DNA from: Tubulanus polymorphus
Taxonomy: Eukaryota; Animalia; Nemertea
DNA length: 64,000 nt
Direction: 5' to 3'
Assembly: GCF_964204645.1 (NCBI RefSeq)
Contig: NC_134032.1
Coordinates: 5,940,275 to 6,004,274, forward strand
The notes below the pieces were generated by a model that saw only the letters and a list, made by a program, of their open reading frames with translations, was not told the DNA's origin and searched no databases. Every line of letters starts with the position of its first letter. The stretch's first letter is position 1. The position numbers and the translations under genes were made by a program. Below are positions 35,538 through 62,800 of this stretch, piece by piece.

Positions 35538-36602
35538 GGGGTGGATATAGAGTCTAAGAAAGGGTGCATCCCCAAAATTGAGTATATCCCTGTAATCAAA
35601 AACCCCTCCATGAGAAAGCTCATCGGAAAACATCAACTGATCTGCCAAAATACAGTGAACAAGCTTAATCAAGTTGATTAGTTAAAAGAAACATGGAAAC
35701 GGTAACAACACCAATAAAGCCAATCGCGATATCAATGGTTCCATGCGAGATTCTTCAAAAGGTTCTGACTACTTATCATTCAAAAGAAAGATCCACATGA
35801 AGCCTGCCAATGGATAAAAGAGTAATGTTCACGAATTCTAGAAACATGGCTCACATTTTTCAAATATATTTGTTAGTTTCTTACTATTTAAACGACAACA
35901 ATTTTACAATCATACTTATGATTAGCGGTGGTCAGGCGATTGTGCTTATGTGTGTATATTTTGACCTAAGATTGATTTTATGTCCATAACTACTGTGCAA
36001 CTATATTGAATTTGCGACCCTTGCACGATCATAGTTCTGGTTTTCATTGAATTCCGGCGCTGGCGTTAGTGTCTTGGCTATAGATATGCGGGTGACCTAA
36101 ATTTGCATTAGGGACGGACTGCAGGATAGATTATCTTGATCAATGCAACATCAGATGAAAACACAGTTGGCAAAAAAACTCCCCAATGAGAACAATTGCA
36201 TGACCCCCAATAAAACCCCCAAACATATCTCAGGCCTAATGCAAAAATGAATCATAACATCAGTTGCAGTACCTATCTTTTTCCCATCAATTAACACTGT
36301 TCTCTGCGGTACCGAGTTCTGTTACCTGTGGACCCCAAGTTTCCGAGGGGGACAGGCAAAATCCAATTTCCCGAAATTCCACGCCTACCGGCCCAAGAGC
36401 GCATACTGCGTATTCATTACGTGTATCATGAAACAAATCGAAAATCGGGAAACTTTGTCACGGGCGCTCGGCCTGTGTGTCTGGTATCAAAATGGAAGAG
36501 AATAGCCGTGGTTTCCTTGAATCAAGTCAAGTCGTATACCAATTTCAAGATAACGATTACCCGTGGCTTCCACCCGAGAAGCAACATTATCAATTCAATC
36601 AA

Positions 36603-36630
36603 ACCCGTCTTTGGACGGGTGATTTGCTAG
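36603..36630 (+). mobile_element. Helitron-like 3' terminus
   Basis: ACCCGTC-TTTG-GACGGGT hairpin, then GATTTG-CTAG|T. Confidence 0.6.
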
Positions 36631-36892
36631 TATTGATAATAATGTCTTTATTTTCAGACAATATTCTCGTATGGCATGTAAAAATATAAGTAATACGTAC
36701 ATATAAGACGGATTTACACATACATACATACATACACACATACCCTCCGTATCATGTGTTGTATTAGTGCTGGAGCTGTGTTAACCTGATGCAAAATCAG
36801 TAATTAAGTGATTACATATGAAAATTAGATTAGATAAACTAGATTGATTAAAGTGATTTGAAATATATTTGACTCGTTTCGATACTATTCAG

Positions 36893-37030
36893 GGCCCAGT
36901 TCCATAGTCGGAACTTAAGTCCCAAAGTGGTCTTAAATCTTAAGACTGGTCTTTAGTTGTTCGATTGGCTATCGAACTAAGTTGGTCTTAGACTGGTCTT
37001 AAGCCGAAGCCATGACTATGCAACCGGCCC
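36893..37030. mobile_element. Harbinger-like MITE containing the ~47-bp minisatellite motif
   Basis: TIR GGCCCAGTTCCATAGTC / GACTATGCAACCGGCC; internal AGACTGGTCTTTAGTTGTTCGATTGGCTATCGAACTAA. Confidence 0.8.
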
Positions 37031-40000
37031 AAGGGGTTTCTCATAAATTTGGCAACTTTATATGTGTTTGGGGTGAATAGTGACATTAGTCTTGGAATGT
37101 GAATTTGCGACCATCGAAAAACCAAGTCTAATTTGACTTGAGTATGAGTACTGGCAAAAATAATAAAGCTCTTTATGTATTTTTGGCACTGGGAATAACT
37201 ATCCTGGTAGATCCTTCGTACCGGTAGATCTCACGTCTGCGTACATGATATCTTGCGAAGCGGAATACCAGCAGTGTGAACACGCACCACAAACGGGTAC
37301 CTTAATATTATGGTGCAGAATAGACATAACGATTGCGTGACTTATCACAGCCACAAATATGGGTGTAATTTAATCATACAAGTACTCCTCGGGTTGAGAG
37401 ACTTGTTGAGAGCTTTTTAATCATATTGCTGCGCCCACCCTGAACAGACGAAATCAATGAATGTCACTTTTTCGTATTTGACGTAAACTAAACGTCATCT
37501 TTTACCTACTTCATATCGGTGACGTCTAATTTGTCTTGTCGGGTTTCCCCTATTTCCTAAGCTAAAGGCTGCCCGGCCATTCCTCCAGAAATCACGCTGA
37601 TCCGTTAATTATATTTTTAGCAATGGTCGCTCAACGTTTTTTGAATTTTTTCAAGACGATGTTTTGAGGCATATCCTGGCTAGCTATTTCTACGTGCATC
37701 ATTGTCTTGCTATGAACTAGAGACTGCCGGTTCAATAATAATCAGTTAAGATTTGATGTATATGACTCATTTTAACTCAAGGCTTTCTCTGACTAAAGTT
37801 CGTGTATTGTAATTTTCAATTTTTATTCTTGATAAGAATCTTTTGTAATGTGTCGATAATGTTCCACGTCTGAGTCTGACTAATTTTCTGTCCCAAAATA
37901 GGTATGATTTCCCATCTTATCTATTTGATATAAGGTTTTCCGTTGATTGGTGTGTCCCTTTACACTCCATCACACCTGCCGGGTAAAGGGATACCGGTGT
38001 CCCAGTGAAGCTGTTTATATGATAGAATCATCAGGTTCAAATTTGGTCAGTCAAACATCCCACGAAACGCCAGTGCACGTGCATATTATGTACACGCCAT
38101 CTACTGCCAATTTCAGGAATATACTGGGGTTTTTAGGATTTATATTCGGGTGAAATGAGACCCTGGATCCGAATAAAATTGTTATCTTTACCATAAGAAA
38201 CCATTCCTCCGTGTACACGCCAAGTTTTATGACCGAACAACGAATAGATTTCGTTCGCACAAACTGGTTATAAAAGACGACAGTTCCCCCTTTATAGTAT
38301 AGATTAACATAGAACGTATATGATGCTATATTCACAATGTCTATCATTGTTTGGTTGTATATGTATTATTGAAGGAGTCATTCAGTTTACCCGGAAGCCA
38401 CTACTACGCAGAGTTCAGATTTAATTTATTGCTCCAGAAATTATACAATTTTTTCGAGCACAGGATACAAAAAATAAACAATTTACAGTTATTCAATCAA
38501 GGTTACTCCAGTTACATTTATAATGTACAGTGACAGTTTCTTCTTCTATACGTATCATTATACACGCAATTAAAACGTGTGTGCACAGCGATGACTAGTA
38601 GCAAAAATCATTTACCCGATAAAGCTATTTATCATACACCAGTTGTGAAAGCTCTCTTGGTTTCTAACGATTTCGGGTAACCTTTTATGGCAAATACAGA
38701 ATTTTTGTCCACCCAGTTTAATGTACTAAATGAATTCGGCGAAAAATTACATACTAAATCACGTGATTATTCTAAACGGCGAATCAGTGTCCGCACTGAA
38801 ACCGCCTAAAATGTGTCACCCCATGGTCTCCAGAATATTATCGCTGGCGAATTATACGACGAACGATTCGCCGAATAAATTTCGCCTTCTCTATCACGGG
38901 CTTAAGCCAGAAAAACATATTTCTTTTGACTCCCGGCGTGGCATGATATAAACAATATTACAAAGTTTTTGCGGAGATATCGATGATACATCGAAGTTCG
39001 AGTAGACATCGGCAATATCCTGTCCGCGCTCGCTTAACACGAAACACTAAAACAATAACTCGATATTCTTTAAGAGCGCCATAAATATTAGAAGGAACGC
39101 TTAATTTGATGTGTTCGCGTTGTAATGAAATAGCGCAAGTGATCATCCAGCGATACAGTCAATGTTTGTTACATTGAATCCATGCCGTACGTAATTTCAT
39201 TCGAAAATTTATGGCAAGTGATTGCATAAACGCCGGAAATTAGTCGTAATTTCAAATTATGGTGCGTGCTTCTATGTATAATCGATAAAAACGTACCTTT
39301 AATCACGATTATTTGTTGCTACAAGCGCAAGTGCTCCATAGTTTTAATGAGAAAAGTCAATGGAGAAACAAAAGTATCTGTATGACAGGGAAAGGCGTTG
39401 TTTTTCCATTGACATTACTTATTTACGGGAAGAAGCTACTCCATGTGGCAAAAGCTCGTGAGATCCGCTATCCTACGCAGTACTCACTCCGCCCGTTTAC
39501 TCATATTTTACCCGGTGAAGCTCTATTCACTAACAAAAGCTCATGATTTCTTACAAAATCGGTTAATCTACAGAATACTACTTGTTTTGACGTTCATTGA
39601 TTTGATACCAGGTTAACACGGTTCCTATACAACTATGACCTATAAATGCAGTCAAATTAGTTTAAGTCTTCGTGCGAAAAGTTGTAACATTAGTGAAGTT
39701 GTCTTTTTTGAGTCGCTATGTATATTTTACATTTGCAATCCGATTCACTGTCAAAATGTGAGTGATTTTTTGGTTAAATCGTCACATTACTGAAAGTCGT
39801 CTCTATTTTAAAGTCAATTTGTATTTCCAATTTAACTTACTACTTGTAGGGGTAAGTTGACATTGTGAAAAGACGTCACATCATTGAACTCGTATCTTTT
39901 TTGAGTCTGAATTTGAAATGCCAACTCACAATTCACTATGTATGTGTTAGTCGTCATTTGGATGTCATCGCATTGCTGGAGTCCCAATTCGTATTTCCAA

Positions 40001-40773
40001 ATTAATTTACTGTTTGTGTAGATCGTCATTAGTTGCCAACATAATGATTGTCCAAACTACGACGACTTGAATTTCACTAGGAGTTAGATTTCGTTACAAA
40101 AAAATTTCTATTCTACATTCTCAATGCGTTGTGCAGTTTTTACTTTGATAACGAATAAGTTAGAAGAAACGTTGAGCTAATTGAAATAAGTGCCTTTGCA
40201 CGAGGGTAAGGCAGTTATACCGTCATTACTCTATAGCCGTGAGGCATATTTTATTAAATTCTAGAACAAGAAAGAACCACGCTTGGTTGTGTATTCGTTT
40301 GTTCTCTTCGGGTATTTCTGCATTTGAAAACGTGATTAAACACAGAAGACCCTTACGCACTTTTTTAAAGAATGTACAAAATATATGGTGTATCAGATAG
40401 GTGGGTGTAGAAAACTTTCTTGTTTCACACCAATGTGAGTTAGGTGGAAAAAAAACACATTGAAACCCAATTTTCGCAAAACTTTTCTTTCTGAAGATAC
40501 TGTGCATGCTGTTTCATTTTACGCATTCGATTTCTATATCATAGAGAATTGATCTCTATATTAAAAGGATCTGACGTGTTCTAACAGATTGGCAAATTTC
40601 TTTTAGCATTCTCAATGCGTTTTAAGTCATAATTGAAATGAGAGGGATTTTACAAACGAAAAGGATTAGGTGGAAAAATGTAATAACAATAATCAAGGAG
40701 GTTTCTGAATTGGCAGGAAACCCTTATGATAGACTCAATATTAACAATGGTTTTTTCGTTTAATTTTTCAGGT

Positions 40774-41163
40774 ATGTATAGCAAAAACAGAGTGCTTACT
40801 TCACTGACAGCTGCCGCATGCATTTTACTGATGTGTCTCGTCTCGGGCGAATCGAAGCCCGTCGCCGGGGAATTCTTCGAGTTGCTACCCCCGGAATTCA
40901 AAGCCGGCTCGTCTGGGAATGGTCCGTCTCCGGACTTGTACCGCCAGGTGGCGCTTCTAGCTAAAGTCCTATTGAACGACAACAAACTGCGGAAGTCGAA
41001 TAACGATGACGTAAAACGGTCAGACGGTAGTTTATCAATTGTCGGTTCGCTAGATGCCTTGGCGGACATGATTTCAGCGCAAGAAGCCAAGAAACTGCAA
41101 AATCAGTTAAAAGCAAACAAAATGAGATTGATGAGATTGGGCAAGCGAAACATCGGCGAGTAG
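40774..41163 (+). CDS. CRH/DH44/egg-laying-hormone (ELH)-family neuropeptide precursor, main coding exon (129 aa from ATG 40774)
   Basis: Strong acceptor TTTTTTCGTTTAATTTTTCAG|G at 40771/40772 and a hydrophobic signal peptide (VLTSLTAAACILLMCLVSGES-KP). KR precedes SDGSLSIVGSLDALADMISAQEAKKLQNQLKANKMRLMRL, followed by G-KR. The SLSI..L..L motif and C-terminal N...L..L-amide match CRH/DH44; LADM matches molluscan ELH. GC is higher than in the flanks. Confidence 0.92.
   Translation: MYSKNRVLTSLTAAACILLMCLVSGESKPVAGEFFELLPPEFKAGSSGNGPSPDLYRQVALLAKVLLNDNKLRKSNNDDVKRSDGSLSIVGSLDALADMISAQEAKKLQNQLKANKMRLMRLGKRNIGE
41020..41139 (+). other. Predicted mature 40-aa amidated CRH/DH44/ELH-like peptide
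   Basis: Bounded by K81-R82 and G123-K124-R125 of the precursor (convertase and amidation signals). Confidence 0.88.
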
Positions 41164-41432
41164 CTGCAGAGAGCAAGTGCACTGCTCTTCATTAGGTCTG
41201 GAATTCGGATATTTTAAGCGATTTGGATATTATGGTTTTTCAAGTACAAAAAAAGTTCTAAACGCAATATTATAACGAGATATTTAAGAATAGACTAACG
41301 GATGGACTGGAAAGAATTGATGAACAAATTGAACACGCTTTATTTTAATCGCTTTTTGTATTACCATTTCGATAAGAAATACAATTCGTATCATGATCCT
41401 TTTTATTATTATAATCGTTTTGTCGGGAGCGA

Positions 41433-41438
41433 AATAAA
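41433..41438 (+). terminator. Candidate polyadenylation signal of the neuropeptide gene
   Basis: First AATAAA, ~270 nt after the stop, at the end of an AT-rich UTR-like tract. Confidence 0.6.
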
Positions 41439-41523
41439 CGATTGAAGATTAACCTCATTATATAACTCAATGTCATTGTACCGTCTAAGATATTCTAAGT
41501 TAAGTTGTGGGGGTGATGCACAG

Positions 41524-41782
41524 AGCTGCGATCTGAACGAACGGAACCGCGTTCACACTGGTGCTAAATGGGTACTTGCCAAATTTGGGCTACAAGCCCC
41601 TGCAAATGATTGTATGTGTATATTTTCTGGTTCTGGAAGTGACTTACCTCACTTTCCACGGCGTCGTTTAGATAGCGTTCAGCATCGAGTGAGCGATATG
41701 CGTGTGTACGCGCAATTTATTTTGATTTGGCTCGGGTCTGATCCAGACCCGAGCCAAATCACGTCTCCGCGCGATTGCGGCT
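41524..41782. mobile_element. Diverged MITE family A-like copy
   Basis: Degenerate TIRs AGCTGCGATCTGAACG / CGCGCGATTGCGGCT and GCCAAAT subterminal motifs. Confidence 0.6.
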
Positions 41783-43439
41783 GTAGACTCCCCCTTACCC
41801 GGTACCGGGCAAATCGGTAAACCGCTCTCAAGCTGGAGCGAGTTTTGCTATGATTGTTTTGGAAAAGACTTCCTTCGCCCTGATTCTGATCACGATAAGC
41901 GGTCAACCCTACCAACCATGTGAGGCGGAGTGTATGTACATGACCTTGGAAACCTATTGGCTAAGCGAAAATAACTAAAATGACGACTCATTTTTTTCGA
42001 TCCCACTATTATGGTTGTAAGCTTCTCATGAAATAAAAGAAAATATCTCAATCCGACCCCACTATTCGATTTAAGTTTCATCTAAAAGATATCACGATTA
42101 TGATCACGGTATGATTATTATCGGTATTCAATAAGGAAACATCAATTAACTACCTGTTTATTTTTCAACGATTCAATCTGAAATCAAACATTCAAAAATT
42201 TTCCCAAATTATCTGGAATTCTACAAGAGAATCAATTGTTAAGAAGAACGATTATGAAGTTGCATTGAAATTACGCGCAATCGTCGTGGATCGATTTTTA
42301 CATAGAGACCTTTATACAACTTGATTACGTATTCGTAACTTCAGTAAAAAAAACATTATACGCATAGTAGACCAAAGTGAAAATTTCCAAAAATGATGAA
42401 AACGTTACAAACCAATACAACCATTTTTCATGCATTTGATTTCACGAAACCTCTACGAGCAACATTAATTCAATCGCCGTGAACGCCATCAACGACATCA
42501 GCGGCTTTGAACCTTCACTATCGCCACTGTCCCTATAAGTCTTTTAAATATTTCTATAATAATCTTTTCCCGAGAAATTGAAACAATTTTTATGTAAATA
42601 CATTTATAAATACAAGTAAAATATGTGCCGATATCAATTGAAGGAACCCAGAGAAGCAAATTGCTTGTAAATTGGCGCACGCACATACGCACACTCATTC
42701 GTTACAAGCATACGAACATTCACACACAGACACATGGACACATAATATAGGAAAACATTACAGAAAAAATTGTGTGAGGATGTACCGAAGGTTCATTGCA
42801 TTGGTTAATTTAATTCTATTTTCACTAATCTTCAGCACGATACCTAGCCGATGAAACAAGGTATCATTTTGTTGCCTTGGCCACAGTCCCATTCTATCCG
42901 AGTTAGACGAGGTTTCTTATACCTGAACCGAATGTGCAAAACGGAATTTTCAATCATGTGTTTTAAACGGCGTGTGATGAGATTGATGATGAATTTGTAT
43001 CGTGCGGTTAGGAGTTAATATAAGACGGCAGTATTACGCCCGCGGCGTTCAGGAATAACAAGAGCGTTTCAGACAAAACATCAAAACACTCAACTTCAAA
43101 TAATTAAGGGTACGGACTGAACATGATAACATAATGCATTTTATACCGTGTTCATAGTCGGATCCAGACGATAGCACAAGGAGCACGTGTTACCGTTGCA
43201 ATTTTCCCGTGCCCGTGCAATTTCATCTGTTATCTCTCGCTCCAGTGCCTGGATGTTGTATTAAAGAATGCAACGCAGATCTGAGTTAGAGTTGGTTCGG
43301 AGTTAAGATTAGTTCATCAGTTATTGTTAAGTCAAATATCAACCTACAGCAACGACACTAGGACCTGTTTTGGTTTGGCGCTAGCTCGGTTTGCCCCTTT
43401 TGATTTATTGTGCTCCTGTCAAATATTGCCCCTAAATCC

Positions 43440-54887: not shown

Positions 54888-57800
54888 GTGACGATAAGAG
54901 CGATATTCACTCTTATGTGTTGCCATGTTGCAAAGTTTGAAAGATTCTCGTTCTGCTCTGGCTGGTTGGGTCAGCCGTGCCCTCAAACCTGTAATGAGAC
55001 TCGTGAATCAAGTAGTATTGATGCCCTCAAATTATGCAAACAGAAGTTGATGCGTGCCTTTGATAAGTTGCAGTCTACTCATCTAAAATACATCGAGCTA
55101 GTTGATGAACAGCCGGTTGTCGATGAAGAGTCATGGTTTGATTTGTATAATGACTCAGTTATCCGTAAATTAGATGCAATTGATTCTAAAATTCAAAATC
55201 TAATAGATTCCAGTAGTTCCAGAAGATCCGTAGCGTCACAGAAGTCTGCCGGTCCGAAAAAGACTTATCCATACACATTGGCTAAGTTAAGCGTTAGTCA
55301 AGCGCGGCGACGAGCCGTAGATGCTCAGGAAGCAGTGGAGAAAGCAGAGATGCGAGTCGACTTGTTGGAATGTTTTGCGGATGAATTGCCGGTGGAAAGG
55401 GCGCTCGGTGTGCATTGGGACGTTGGATCAGACAGCTTTGTCTTCAAGCAAGTGGGTAAAGGGGGCTTTCCAACCACAAAACGTCGTATCGTGAGTTTAG
55501 TTAGTTCGATTCTTGACTCCCTGGGATTTGTTTCCCCCTTTATCTTGAGGGCAAAAGGCATCACTCAGGAACTTTGGCGTCAAGGAAACGACTGGGACGA
55601 CCCGATAGATGGGGACTTAGCTGATAGATGGCAGAACTGGGTCCAAGAGTTGAAGTGTTTGGCTGGATTTTGTGTTAATCGACATCACATCGACTTGGTA
55701 GTCAGCGACACTGCGGTCGAACTTCACGTATTTGCCAATGCTTCTGAACAGGGATTTGGAGCTGTTGTTTATTTACGTATCATCATACCTAATGGTGAGT
55801 TCCATTGTTCATTTCTCGCTTCCAAAACTCATATAGCACCTGTGAAGTCCCTGACTATCCCTTAGTTAGAGCTAGAGGGCGCTGTCTTAGCTGTCTTAAT
55901 ATGCAACATCTTGGAGGAAGAGCTGCACGATCAGCTGAAATTTCAACGTATTCTCTTCTGGACGGACTCCCTGAATGTCCTCCGTTACATTAATAATAAG
56001 ACTACGAGATTCAAGAAGTTAGTCGCAAATCGGCTGACGAAGATTATGCAGAGCTCGGAGGTTGAGCAGTGGATGCATGTTTCATCTACCATGAATCCGG
56101 CAGATGCATGTACACGTGGTTTGCGTGCGGATGAAATAGCGCAATCTCGTTTTCTAAAAGGGCCTGAAATTTTGTGGTATGACATTGATCAATAGCCCGG
56201 TCAAGAAATTGTTCGAGGCCCTGTTCGAAATGAAACTGAAATAAAAAGAGCCATTGTAAATACTTGTGACAGTACAATTGTTGAAAATTCTGTAAATACT
56301 ACAGATTATTTTCGTCACATTTTCATGGGCTTGCATGCTTGCAAGCCCATATTGCTATCACACGGATTGATAAGTTGCTTGGGGAGTCGATAACTTTCGT
56401 TAGAAACTTTCTTGGGCTCTGATATTTACACACATTTAATGCAGTAATAAAATCTAGGTTCCTTCGTATATTGGCTATATCGGTTGTCGTTTTCACTGTC
56501 TTATGATTTAGTTTAATCGTTTTTTGTTATTTCAGCAGCGCATACCGACCTAGGTTGAGCGTGCGTGATAAGTGTTGTAATTGGTATTCATGCGCGGCAT
56601 AGTGCTGCCGACAATTCAATTCATTCTTTACTGACACAATAAAAGATTTACTTTCACGTTTTTGAAAAATTCTTTTAATTTTCTTTTACTTTCATTGGGT
56701 GCTTGCGTTAGCATTTGAAAAATCTCTGTATGAACATTTATATTCTTCATTTTAAGTATCTAAAACTAATTAAAACCCGCTTTTCTATAAAATAAATTCT
56801 GAATTGAATTGAAGACTGGTTCCCTGTCTCTTCCAAGAGCCAGGGGGCGGTAGTCTATGGTGGCAATAAACTTTAGGAGTAAACTTTATCGGATGATCGT
56901 AGTGGATTGTCGTTTGCAACTTATTCTTGCTTAATGTCTTTATTATTTCAAAAAGAAAAATCGTGGCTCCTATCTATTTTCGAGTGCGGCTTCTATGCAA
57001 AATCATTTCAACAAATCCGATACGTAATCTAGCAATTATCTACACGATGATAGATTCCGTCAAGACACTGCAATATTAAAATATAAACTATCCAAAAGCT
57101 TGCACTAACTTGGTCCACGTCTACACTAAAAACATTCTCCGATTCCCAGTCCCCGTGTGTAACATTTGATGTACGATGTACGACAACACCGATCTCTTGG
57201 CTCTTTAAGTAATCAGTTCAAAGTTCGATTAATTCTACTACAGAAATACAAAACCACCAAGCAAGCTTTCAGTACAACCATGTCAGCAAGCCCATTATTA
57301 GGATCTCTTTCTTGTTGTTTCTGATATTGTCGAGATTGAGAAGTTTTCTAGTTGGATGAAGTTACAGCGACATACTGCTTTGGTTCTTAGAGCAGTTACA
57401 AAGTTTGTGAAACATATTCCACTTTTGAACAGGGTATATGGGAATGATATTTCATCCAAATTCTTGCTGTACTCTTTAATGAAGCCCGCTTCATATTTTC
57501 TCGTAAAGGATGCTCGTATGCGGTATTTTTGCCCATGAGATTGATTCACTAAGCTGTGATAATGTCCTTTCTAGGAAAAGTTCTCTAGTGTCGCTTTTTC
57601 GATGGAAAACTGCTACGGGTTGGGGGCAGGCTGAGTAGGGCTAACATCCCCTAGGAAGCAAAATATCAGATTATTCCGCCATACGGTGACTACATAACTC
57701 GCCTCCTAATCACGTTCACTCGTGATATCTTATAACACTCAGGTACTGAACACGTAATTGCCGAGTTACGTCAAATATATTGGCCATTGATAGCACGATG

Positions 57801-59865: not shown

Positions 59866-62800
59866 TGTCGTGACTCGCAGAAGAGAGCGCTGCAAAAGGT
59901 ATGTCCACCTTACTTACCTTACATCATAAATTCGGTAAACTCGAAGAAATTGAGCGAGATCTTGTCAGTGAGTGTACGTTAAAGGGCGCAGCTTTGAGCG
60001 AATTCGTTTCAGCCGGAGACGATGAATTGAATGATAAATTGACAGATATCAATTTTCTCGAATTTGCGTTTAACGAGCTTTTGTCGAAAAATAGGTCCGA
60101 TTCGAACAATGCGGCAACCCATCAAAGGTCGAGAATTTCGTTGCCAAAATTGCAATTACCGAAATTTAGTGGCGATATCCTAGAATGGTCGCCCTTCTGG
60201 GATTTGTTCGAATCTACAGTCGACAACCAACATTCGCTGAGTGACGTCGAAAAGTTCGGTCATCTGAAATGCCATTTAGGCGGTGACGCAAGGCTCGTTA
60301 TTGAAGGTCTGCCTTTAACTTCCGTTAATTATGTTAAAGCTAAACAACTCTTGAAGGATAGATTTGGCGTTTCTCATAAGATAAGCGAGGCCAATTTGAA
60401 CCAACTAGTTGATTTAGAACCTCCAGTCTACAGTTTAAATTCGTTGCGTCGTTTTTATGATAATTTAGAGCTGCATATCCGAAGTCTTGAATCTTTGAAG
60501 GTCGGGGCCGAGTCCTATGGTACACTTCTAGTTCCTATTACCATGAATAAATTGCCCGTGAGGTAAAGCGGAACATTGCGCGTGCGAATGGGAGTTGCGA
60601 ATTTGAATTGTCTGTGTTACGTTCTGCGATATTAGATGAAATTAATATTCTCGAGTTCTGCGATACGTCATCAGCCGGAACGATGACGTCACTTCTCGTC
60701 GACAATAATACCGCAAAGAATGTGCATGATTATAATCGTGTGAAGTTTAAATGTCGTTTTTGTCAGTCGAATGACCATTACCCACGGCTTGTGGGCTATA
60801 CGTTGAACCGCAGGCTAGGCTGAATTTTGTTTTACGAAACAAGTTATGTTTCAATTGTCTTGGTGCTCATAGAATGAATAAATGTTCGTCAAAGGGTTCA
60901 TGTAGAGTTTGTAACAAACGACATCATACTAGTATTCATGGGGCGGAATTTCCGGGGCAGTTGAAAGTTCAAGTTCATTCTGTTAATTCGAAAGCTGGGC
61001 CCTCACATCCACCGGTAGCTAAAACTCCACGTGAATTACAACATGGTAAAACGTCTAATAACGTTTCTAATTCAGATTCAGGGTCTTCAGATAAGGCTGG
61101 CATTGATGATCCACCGCCGCCAGTTTCTGAATTTAATCATCTTTCCGTGGTTTAGGGTGGTGTTTCCTCTACTATATATCTGAAGACTGCTGTAGCACCG
61201 GTGGAGAGTGAAGGTACTCACATCGTACTTTCGTTACGTCGGCATTAGTTCGCCAGCTAGGTGTTAAACCTCATAGATTTGAATCCGTTGATTTGAGTGG
61301 GTTCGGTGCTGTCAGTACTGGGTCTAGAGTAGTTGACGTCGTGTGGATCAGTATTACGTGTACTGTTGATAAATCAGTTGTTTCTGTAGAAGCTATCGTT
61401 GTATCGGAGATAACCAGACCACTCAGAGTTTCTAACAGTTCAGTTAATTGCATACCTGAATTTTAAGGTTTGAATTTTGCCCATCCGCCGGGGTACAGTT
61501 CTAGTTCCTTTGATATCTCATTACTCATTGGATCTGATTATTACTACCTTTTTGTTCTTGGTAATCAGTTCATTAAATCTGCATGTGGCCCGGTTGCTGT
61601 TCCGTCGAAATTGGGTCATTTAATTGCGGGTCGGTATAACGGTGATGACTTAACCAATTCTGTTCAATTGTCTATAATTGCTGAACCTGACACTTTCGAT
61701 CTCAGACGTTTCTGGTCTCTAGAAACGTTGGGTATAGAGTCACCTACTGACCGAGATACATATTTTCTGGATGAGTTCTGTAGTAAGTCTATCATGTTAG
61801 TAGACGGGAGATACAGGGTTAATTTGCCTTGGAAAGATAATCACGGCATACTACCCACAAATTATAATGTTTCCAAAGCCAGAACTCGCTCTACGGTTCG
61901 CCGCATCGCTAAAACCGAAGGTTTGTTGGAGAAATATAGTGCTGTAATTACTGATCAATTGTCACGTGGGTTTATTGAGCCTGTTGAAATTCCCTCCGTT
62001 TCTAGCACTCGTGAGCATTATATTCCTCATCACCCGGTTTTCAGGCAGTCATCTACTACTCCGATTCGTATTGTTTTCGATTGCAGCTGTCGACAGTCGA
62101 AGTCTTCCGTATCTCTTAATGACTGCCTGGAAGCTGGGTCACCGTTGCTGAACGATATTACTTCTATTTTGATGCGTTTCCGTTTGTTCAATTATGGGAT
62201 TGCCACCGATATCGAGAAAGCATTCTTGCAGATTGAATTAAGTCCTGATGATCGTGATTCAACCAGATTTTTTTGGTTGAGTGACTCTAGCGATCCGGAG
62301 AGCGAGTTTACTATATATAGATTCAAGCGTATCTTGTTCGGGGCTACATGTTCACCCTTTTTATTGAATAGTTGCATTATAAACCATGAGAAATCATGAG
62401 AGTGAACTTTCTCAACAACTTCTGAGAGACATATATGTTGATAACATTGTATCTAGTGTTCCTACTGAGTCAGATGCTTTGCGTTTTTTCCACGGTTCTA
62501 GACAAGCTTCTCGGAAGTCAATTTGAATTTACGTTGTTGGTCCTCTCACTCGAAAGAGCTCCAAAAGTTTGCTACTGATCATGGGTATATAGAAAGCTCT
62601 ACTGTCGTGAATATTTTTGGTATCAGTTGGGATGTTGAAAAGGATGAATTGTCTTATGTTCCCAAAGTTTTATCATCTGTTTATCCATGCACAAAACGCC
62701 TTGTCCTACAGAGAGCTGCAACAGTTTATGATCCACTAGGTCTCCTAGCTCCAGTTACGATTCGAACTAAAATGCTATTGCAGGATATTTGGAAGCAAAA

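Follow-up and report, generated by a model that had tools for sequence, protein, structure and literature searches.

The question raised by this locus is whether a short open reading frame in the genome of the palaeonemertean ribbon worm Tubulanus polymorphus encodes a genuine neuropeptide precursor and, if it does, to which family the peptide belongs and what it adds to that family. The window analysed here is a stretch of 64,000 nucleotides, and a first reading of its letters (the sequence-only reading) had described an intact precursor of the CRH/DH44/ELH family, hidden in a transposon-rich region and possibly a bridging sequence between the branches of that family. CRH, DH44 and ELH are already accepted as a bilaterian family, the unity of which rests mainly on receptor orthology. 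Our analysis indicates that the locus is very probably a DH44/ELH-type (CRH-family) neuropeptide precursor gene, and that it is neither hidden nor, as an example of its kind, new.

The complete coding sequence, read directly as an open reading frame, occupies positions 40774-41163 of the forward strand, on which all features of the gene given below also lie. It comprises 129 codons and a stop, uninterrupted and within a single coding exon of the window sequence. A pyrimidine-rich tract and AG splice acceptor, ending aatttttcag, precede this exon (40750-40771); the exon starts with GT and the ATG at 40774 follows, immediately past the acceptor. The start codon is backed by the published Tubulanus orthologue discussed below, in which M-H-S-K stands where the window protein has M-Y-S-K. 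Residues 1-25 (40774-40848) form a predicted signal peptide, recognised from hydropathy and the -3/-1 rule as heuristics only, with a basic n-region (K4 and R6), a 17-residue hydrophobic core whose 11-residue Kyte-Doolittle mean reaches 2.95, and a predicted cleavage site after a V-S-G sequence that precedes E26 in agreement with the -3/-1 rule. The pro-region (residues 26-80; 40849-41013) leads to a dibasic KR site at residues 81-82 (41014-41019), directly upstream of the predicted mature peptide, which is 40 residues long (41020-41139), starts SDGSLSIV, ends MRLMRL and is predicted to be amidated at its C-terminus. The G-K-R sequence that follows (41140-41148) combines the amidation donor glycine with a second dibasic site (KR, residues 124-125); in an alignment of the family (A2) the G never varies and the K and R hardly do. 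The precursor closes with a four-residue tail, NIGE, and TAG (41149-41163, the stop codon being 41161-41163). A candidate polyadenylation signal, AATAAA, lies at 41433-41438, 270 nt past the stop, and is the sole AATAAA or ATTAAA in the ~840 nt downstream of it. The splice acceptor, the signal-peptide-like N-terminus (by heuristic), the KR-[40 aa]-GKR arrangement and the AATAAA are all located where the sequence-only reading had placed them. The precursor gene is single-copy in its own genome (268 Mb in 77 contigs).

Precursors of this type have been described from nemerteans before. A survey by Thiel et al. (2021, Mol Biol Evol; PMC8557429), covering the neuropeptides of nemerteans, brachiopods and phoronids, reported DH44/ELH precursors in nine of 13 nemertean species, Tubulanus polymorphus among them, confirmed peptides of the Lineus longissimus precursor by mass spectrometry, and filed the nemertean precursors and receptors under a joint CRF/CRH/DH44/ELH heading. 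The sequence labelled 'Tubulanus polymorphus' in the supplement to that survey (comp30742_c0_seq1) shares the design of the window protein: a signal peptide, a pro-region, KR, one 40-residue peptide, GKR and a short tail. Compared by eye, the two mature peptides agree at 33 of 40 positions, among them all of SLSIVGSLDAL and the final 14 residues, and the pro-regions have the motifs LP-x-EFK and DLYR-x-VA in common. Seven substitutions separate the peptides, divergence is much greater in the signal peptide and in the spacers of the pro-region, and the published precursor is 141 residues long compared with 129 here.

Both a protein search and a peptide-profile search of the present genome found no copy matching the published Tubulanus sequence. 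Given these sequence differences and the lack of a matching second copy, the published sequence and that of the window must come from different animals. A run from 2015 carrying the same species label (X5) contains none of the 31-mers of the locus, which is explained by species divergence rather than by silence of the gene. The Pacific 'T. polymorphus' (properly T. ruber) and the Atlantic T. polymorphus are different species (PMC8468679), and the difference between the animal of this genome and the one behind the 2015 transcriptome is consistent with this Atlantic/Pacific split.

The exact 129-residue protein is already present in NCBI, UniRef and the ESM Atlas. As public annotation already calls the gene, it cannot be described as hidden, and as an orthologue of nemertean DH44/ELH precursors published in 2021 it is an ordinary find. 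The notion of a bridging sequence loses its novelty in the same way, nemertean DH44/ELH precursors having already been published as counterparts of CRH and DH44 (PMC8557429).

The arrangement of the precursor suggests a conventional route of maturation. A non-coding 5' exon would be spliced to the one coding exon, as the indirect transcript evidence given below implies, and the signal peptide is predicted to direct the 129-residue prepropeptide into the secretory pathway. From the sequence and from what is known of the family, prohormone convertases would then cut at the two KR sites, residues 81-82 and 124-125; by analogy with other members, the basic residues would be removed by a carboxypeptidase and the C-terminal amide formed from Gly123. 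The expected product is a single 40-residue amidated peptide, probably helical. Since the precursor holds further dibasic sites, KK at residues 106-107 inside the peptide and RK at residues 73-74, a real DH44/ELH precursor might instead yield bioactive products other than the 40-mer, either through cleavage at KK or RK or as a second product of the pro-region, whose motifs are conserved (by eye) between the two Tubulanus sequences. We regard this as unlikely. In alignment A2 the relatives carry RH, RR or RRR at the position of the internal KK, and because basic pairs and triplets are conserved there across the family, this KK is probably part of the peptide rather than a cleavage site. The pro-region, for its part, is without flanking cleavage or amidation sites and without similarity to ELH.

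Placement in the family rests in the first instance on a full HMMER scan of 1.84 billion representative proteins. Besides the query itself, this returned six real relatives and one spurious match to a protein of 2,604 residues. The best relative was the Lineus longissimus protein XP_064652572 (E = 5.6e-9); a hoplonemertean-like protein followed at E = 7.7e-6, and bivalve ELH precursors, from Sinanodonta and Argopecten, at 8e-6 to 7e-4. The mature peptide was the matched region in all six, and five of the six clear the gathering score of Pfam ELH, at profile positions 194-238. These nearest relatives, nemertean and bivalve DH44/ELH precursors that mostly pass Pfam ELH, bear out the identification of an intact precursor of this family. 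A profile made from 11 ELH peptides of nemerteans and bivalves, with the query left out, gave the window peptide a score of 62.7 bits. A profile search of a collection of 5.8 billion proteins retrieved 39 proteins, nearly all of them bivalve ELH precursors, with source names that included both 'Egg laying hormone protein' and 'Corticotropin-releasing factor domain-containing protein'. Among matches by ESM Atlas features, 17 of 30 belonged to the CRF family, the top ones being DH44, Diuretic 41 and urocortin 3 clusters (score 0.93, with ~190 shared features). A word-indexed protein search with the whole precursor found only the query itself.

The sequence-only reading had proposed comparison with the CRF profile HMM and with ELH/DH44 alignments. 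The Pfam ELH and CRF models were both matched at the correct positions, and both below their cut-offs. The window protein scores 15-17 bits against Pfam ELH (PF02323), at the homologous positions 194-238, where the cut-off is 20, such a gathering score being an operational threshold and not a biological feature. Against Pfam CRF (PF00473) it scores 14.8-15.5 bits compared with a cut-off of 22.1 (E = 0.02-0.03), over profile positions 2-32 of 38. Falling under both cut-offs is what might be expected of a peptide from another helical, amidated family, such as DH31/calcitonin or PDF/cerebrin, that merely resembles DH44/ELH. Nevertheless, the significant relatives are all DH44/ELH precursors, the calcitonin and PDF families of Pfam gave no match even at E values up to 10, and the nemertean DH31 precursors differ from the window protein in both design and sequence (PMC8557429, supplement). 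A grouping with calcitonin or PDF, named beforehand as an outcome that would count against the family assignment, did not emerge from these searches, and we consider membership of such a family highly improbable.

The best relative in the protein scan was that of Lineus longissimus. The long C-terminal peptide of XP_064652572 (P0002) aligns with the window peptide over its whole length, with 53% identity over a 47-residue segment that includes the flanking cleavage sites, and the two have in common an LS-x-x-GSLDAL core and an RLGKR ending. Whereas the precursors of Lineus and of bivalves contain a short ELH-type peptide and, after it, a long one, that of the window has the long one only. A segment of its pro-region (DLYR-x-VALLAKVLL) was tried as a decayed first ELH copy and rejected, its score of -0.7 bits falling below those of shuffled controls. 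The molluscan ELH peptides (Argopecten, Mizuhopecten and Sinanodonta; PF02323) are homologous, sharing the core L-S-[IV]-x-G-x-L-x-x-L-A-x-M-L, the amidation and the end N-x-x-R-L-L-x-L-G-K-R. The ELH-like LADM that had been pointed out in the middle of the peptide is part of this resemblance, since LADM-x-SAQ keeps the spiralian ELH pattern.

At its N-terminus the window peptide is nearer to insect DH44 than the molluscan ELH peptides are. Mosquito DH44 (PMC9387463) has an identical SLSIV start followed by x-x-LD-x-L, and by eye some 13 of the 40 residues agree, so that the DH44-like start claimed for the peptide holds against dipteran DH44. With insect DH44 and the vertebrate CRH-urocortins it also shares a length class of 40-44 residues and an amidated C-terminus (predicted here), and it carries the N-terminal motif of the CRF family, S-[LI]-S-[LI]-[DV], together with a hydrophobic C-terminus, the peptide ending in L before GKR. 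It differs from them at its middle, which keeps to the spiralian ELH pattern, and gave no significant match to insect DH44 or vertebrate CRH. Neither sequence nor profile searches arrived at an arthropod DH44 or a vertebrate CRH with a meaningful E-value: a profile of whole precursors drifted towards bivalve ELH and returned no arthropod DH44, and a PDB search with the peptide and a 12-sequence profile returned no CRF, urocortin or sauvagine chain, with chance matches to TraR and a designed TPR protein. The tie to arthropod DH44 and vertebrate CRH rests on the literature, the marginal CRF match, the ESM features and the shared SLSIV start. Among 12 spiralian ELH-type peptides scanned, the window peptide was the only one to touch the CRF model, albeit marginally (E = 0.03), and this lone match is the only residual support for calling the sequence a bridge. 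On these comparisons it is fair to see the peptide as closer to DH44 than most spiralian ELHs are.

Four runs of one 2024 study contain the locus, none of which is on record as RNA. In X4, one contig (record 24; 734 nt, depth 39) aligns to 40770-41338 with no mismatches, and its remaining 165 letters could be placed nowhere in 36100-42000. The break in this contig falls two bases from the predicted junction, which points to an mRNA onto which a non-coding exon from further upstream has been spliced. We give the coding exon as 40772-41338, that is, as far as this transcript-like contig reaches, coverage of the locus in X4 being patchy and contigs being unable to reveal the ends of an RNA. In X2 and X3, contigs span the exon together with its flanks and read through the acceptor without splicing (40433-40886), as expected of genomic DNA. 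The lack of any transcript across the exon had been named as a result that would speak against the gene; the X4 contig starting at the acceptor is evidence to the contrary, if of an indirect kind, and the case that the gene is transcribed and spliced is good but indirect.

The X4 depth at 39843-40236 was considered as a 5' exon and rejected, the sequence at 39800-39984 belonging to a satellite family with a repeat unit of ~91 bp. The window holds two units of this satellite there, 72-76% identical, and long tandem arrays of it are found on contigs 6 and 8. The high contig depth of X4 just upstream of the gene is attributable to this satellite.

Domain matches elsewhere in the window identified an RVT_1 reverse transcriptase fragment on the reverse strand (1182-1892) and, on the forward strand, a Pao/BEL-type aspartic peptidase fragment (54888-55865), a DUF1759 fragment (59901-60566) and a second, weak RVT_1 (61470-62399). 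DUF1759 is a family known from Pao/BEL-type retrotransposon proteins. The description of the region as transposon-rich is correct in that the window contains retrotransposon ORF fragments, but none of them comes within 13 kb of the precursor gene. The retrotransposon fragments and the satellite repeat nearby are all that would recommend a chance reading frame or a dead gene copy amid transposon debris, a reading so improbable as to be effectively refuted already, for the frame is intact and single-copy with its processing sites preserved, the cross-phylum homologues are confined to the functional peptide, the X4 contig is consistent with a spliced transcript and public annotation already has the gene.

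If the gene is a DH44/ELH-type precursor, its peptide would most likely act on a class B GPCR of the CRH/DH44 type and raise cAMP. The 2021 survey recorded no CRH/DH44-type receptor in the Tubulanus transcriptome, compared with one or two in most other nemerteans (PMC8557429). Searches of the present genome with the HRM and 7tm_2 domains found at least 12 multi-exon receptor genes of the secretin type, of which contig 10 carries eight, and these were compared exon by exon with solved structures. One, on the forward strand at G000:C10:11331185-11337324 (loci L009 and L061) and recognised by its HRM and TM3-TM4 exons, is a class B GPCR gene resembling CRF receptors. Its TM3-TM4 exon scores 54.5 bits against human CRF1R and 54.3 against CRF2R, compared with 39.1 for VIPR1, the next family, and its ectodomain (HRM) exon scores 34.2 bits against CRFR2 compared with 27.5 for the glucagon receptor. 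By these scores the gene is a reasonable candidate, within the same genome, for the receptor of the window peptide. Two other genes were set aside as candidates: that at 12.14 Mb on contig 10 is best matched by the calcitonin receptor (43.9 bits, compared with 40.2 for CRF1R) and so is not the best choice, and that at 0.137 Mb is GLP1R-like. The same genome also carries dozens of intronless ORFs of ~750-900 residues, each including a complete 7tm_2 domain and many arranged in tandem, on contigs 1, 3, 4, 6 and 9 (for example, the group at C4:21996872-22022454), which look like a large expansion of adhesion/secretin-like GPCRs.

A peptide-profile match also drew attention to a locus on contig 7. 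The match itself covers G000:C7:16938255-16938368, with E = 0.018 for the whole genome, and around it a candidate two-exon gene for a short ELH/DH44-like peptide can be drawn on the forward strand at G000:C7:16937599-16938374 (L025:8100-8875). Exon 1 supplies an ATG, a strongly hydrophobic, signal-like segment and a phase-compatible CAG|GTAAAG donor; after a candidate intron of 503 nt, exon 2 has a tcatttcag acceptor, YRKR, a 33-residue peptide with an LSVS-ALADML core, GRK and a stop. Against the short, first-copy peptides of Lineus and bivalves this peptide reaches 19.1 bits, compared with 15.1 against the long copies, and 1,000 shuffles produced no score as high as either. It gave no Pfam match and no supportive match in the ESM Atlas. 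Judged on these features, the contig-7 locus is a weak candidate for a second, short ELH-like peptide gene.

What the window locus adds is the genomic coordinates and the exon structure of a gene of this family in a palaeonemertean. The genome animal and the animal of the 2015 transcriptome are shown to differ, which is relevant to the split between Atlantic and Pacific Tubulanus. Should the contig-7 gene be real, this animal would have on separate genes the short and the long peptide that Lineus and bivalves combine in one precursor. We put forward only tentatively, as a possibility that we rate somewhat below even, that this palaeonemertean, an early-branching nemertean, with a long, unusually DH44-like peptide encoded in the window, a short peptide encoded on contig 7 and a CRF-type receptor encoded on contig 10, has a complete, slightly rearranged CRH-type system. 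With the CRF-type receptor gene pointed out, the pairing of ligand and receptor is open to testing in a palaeonemertean.
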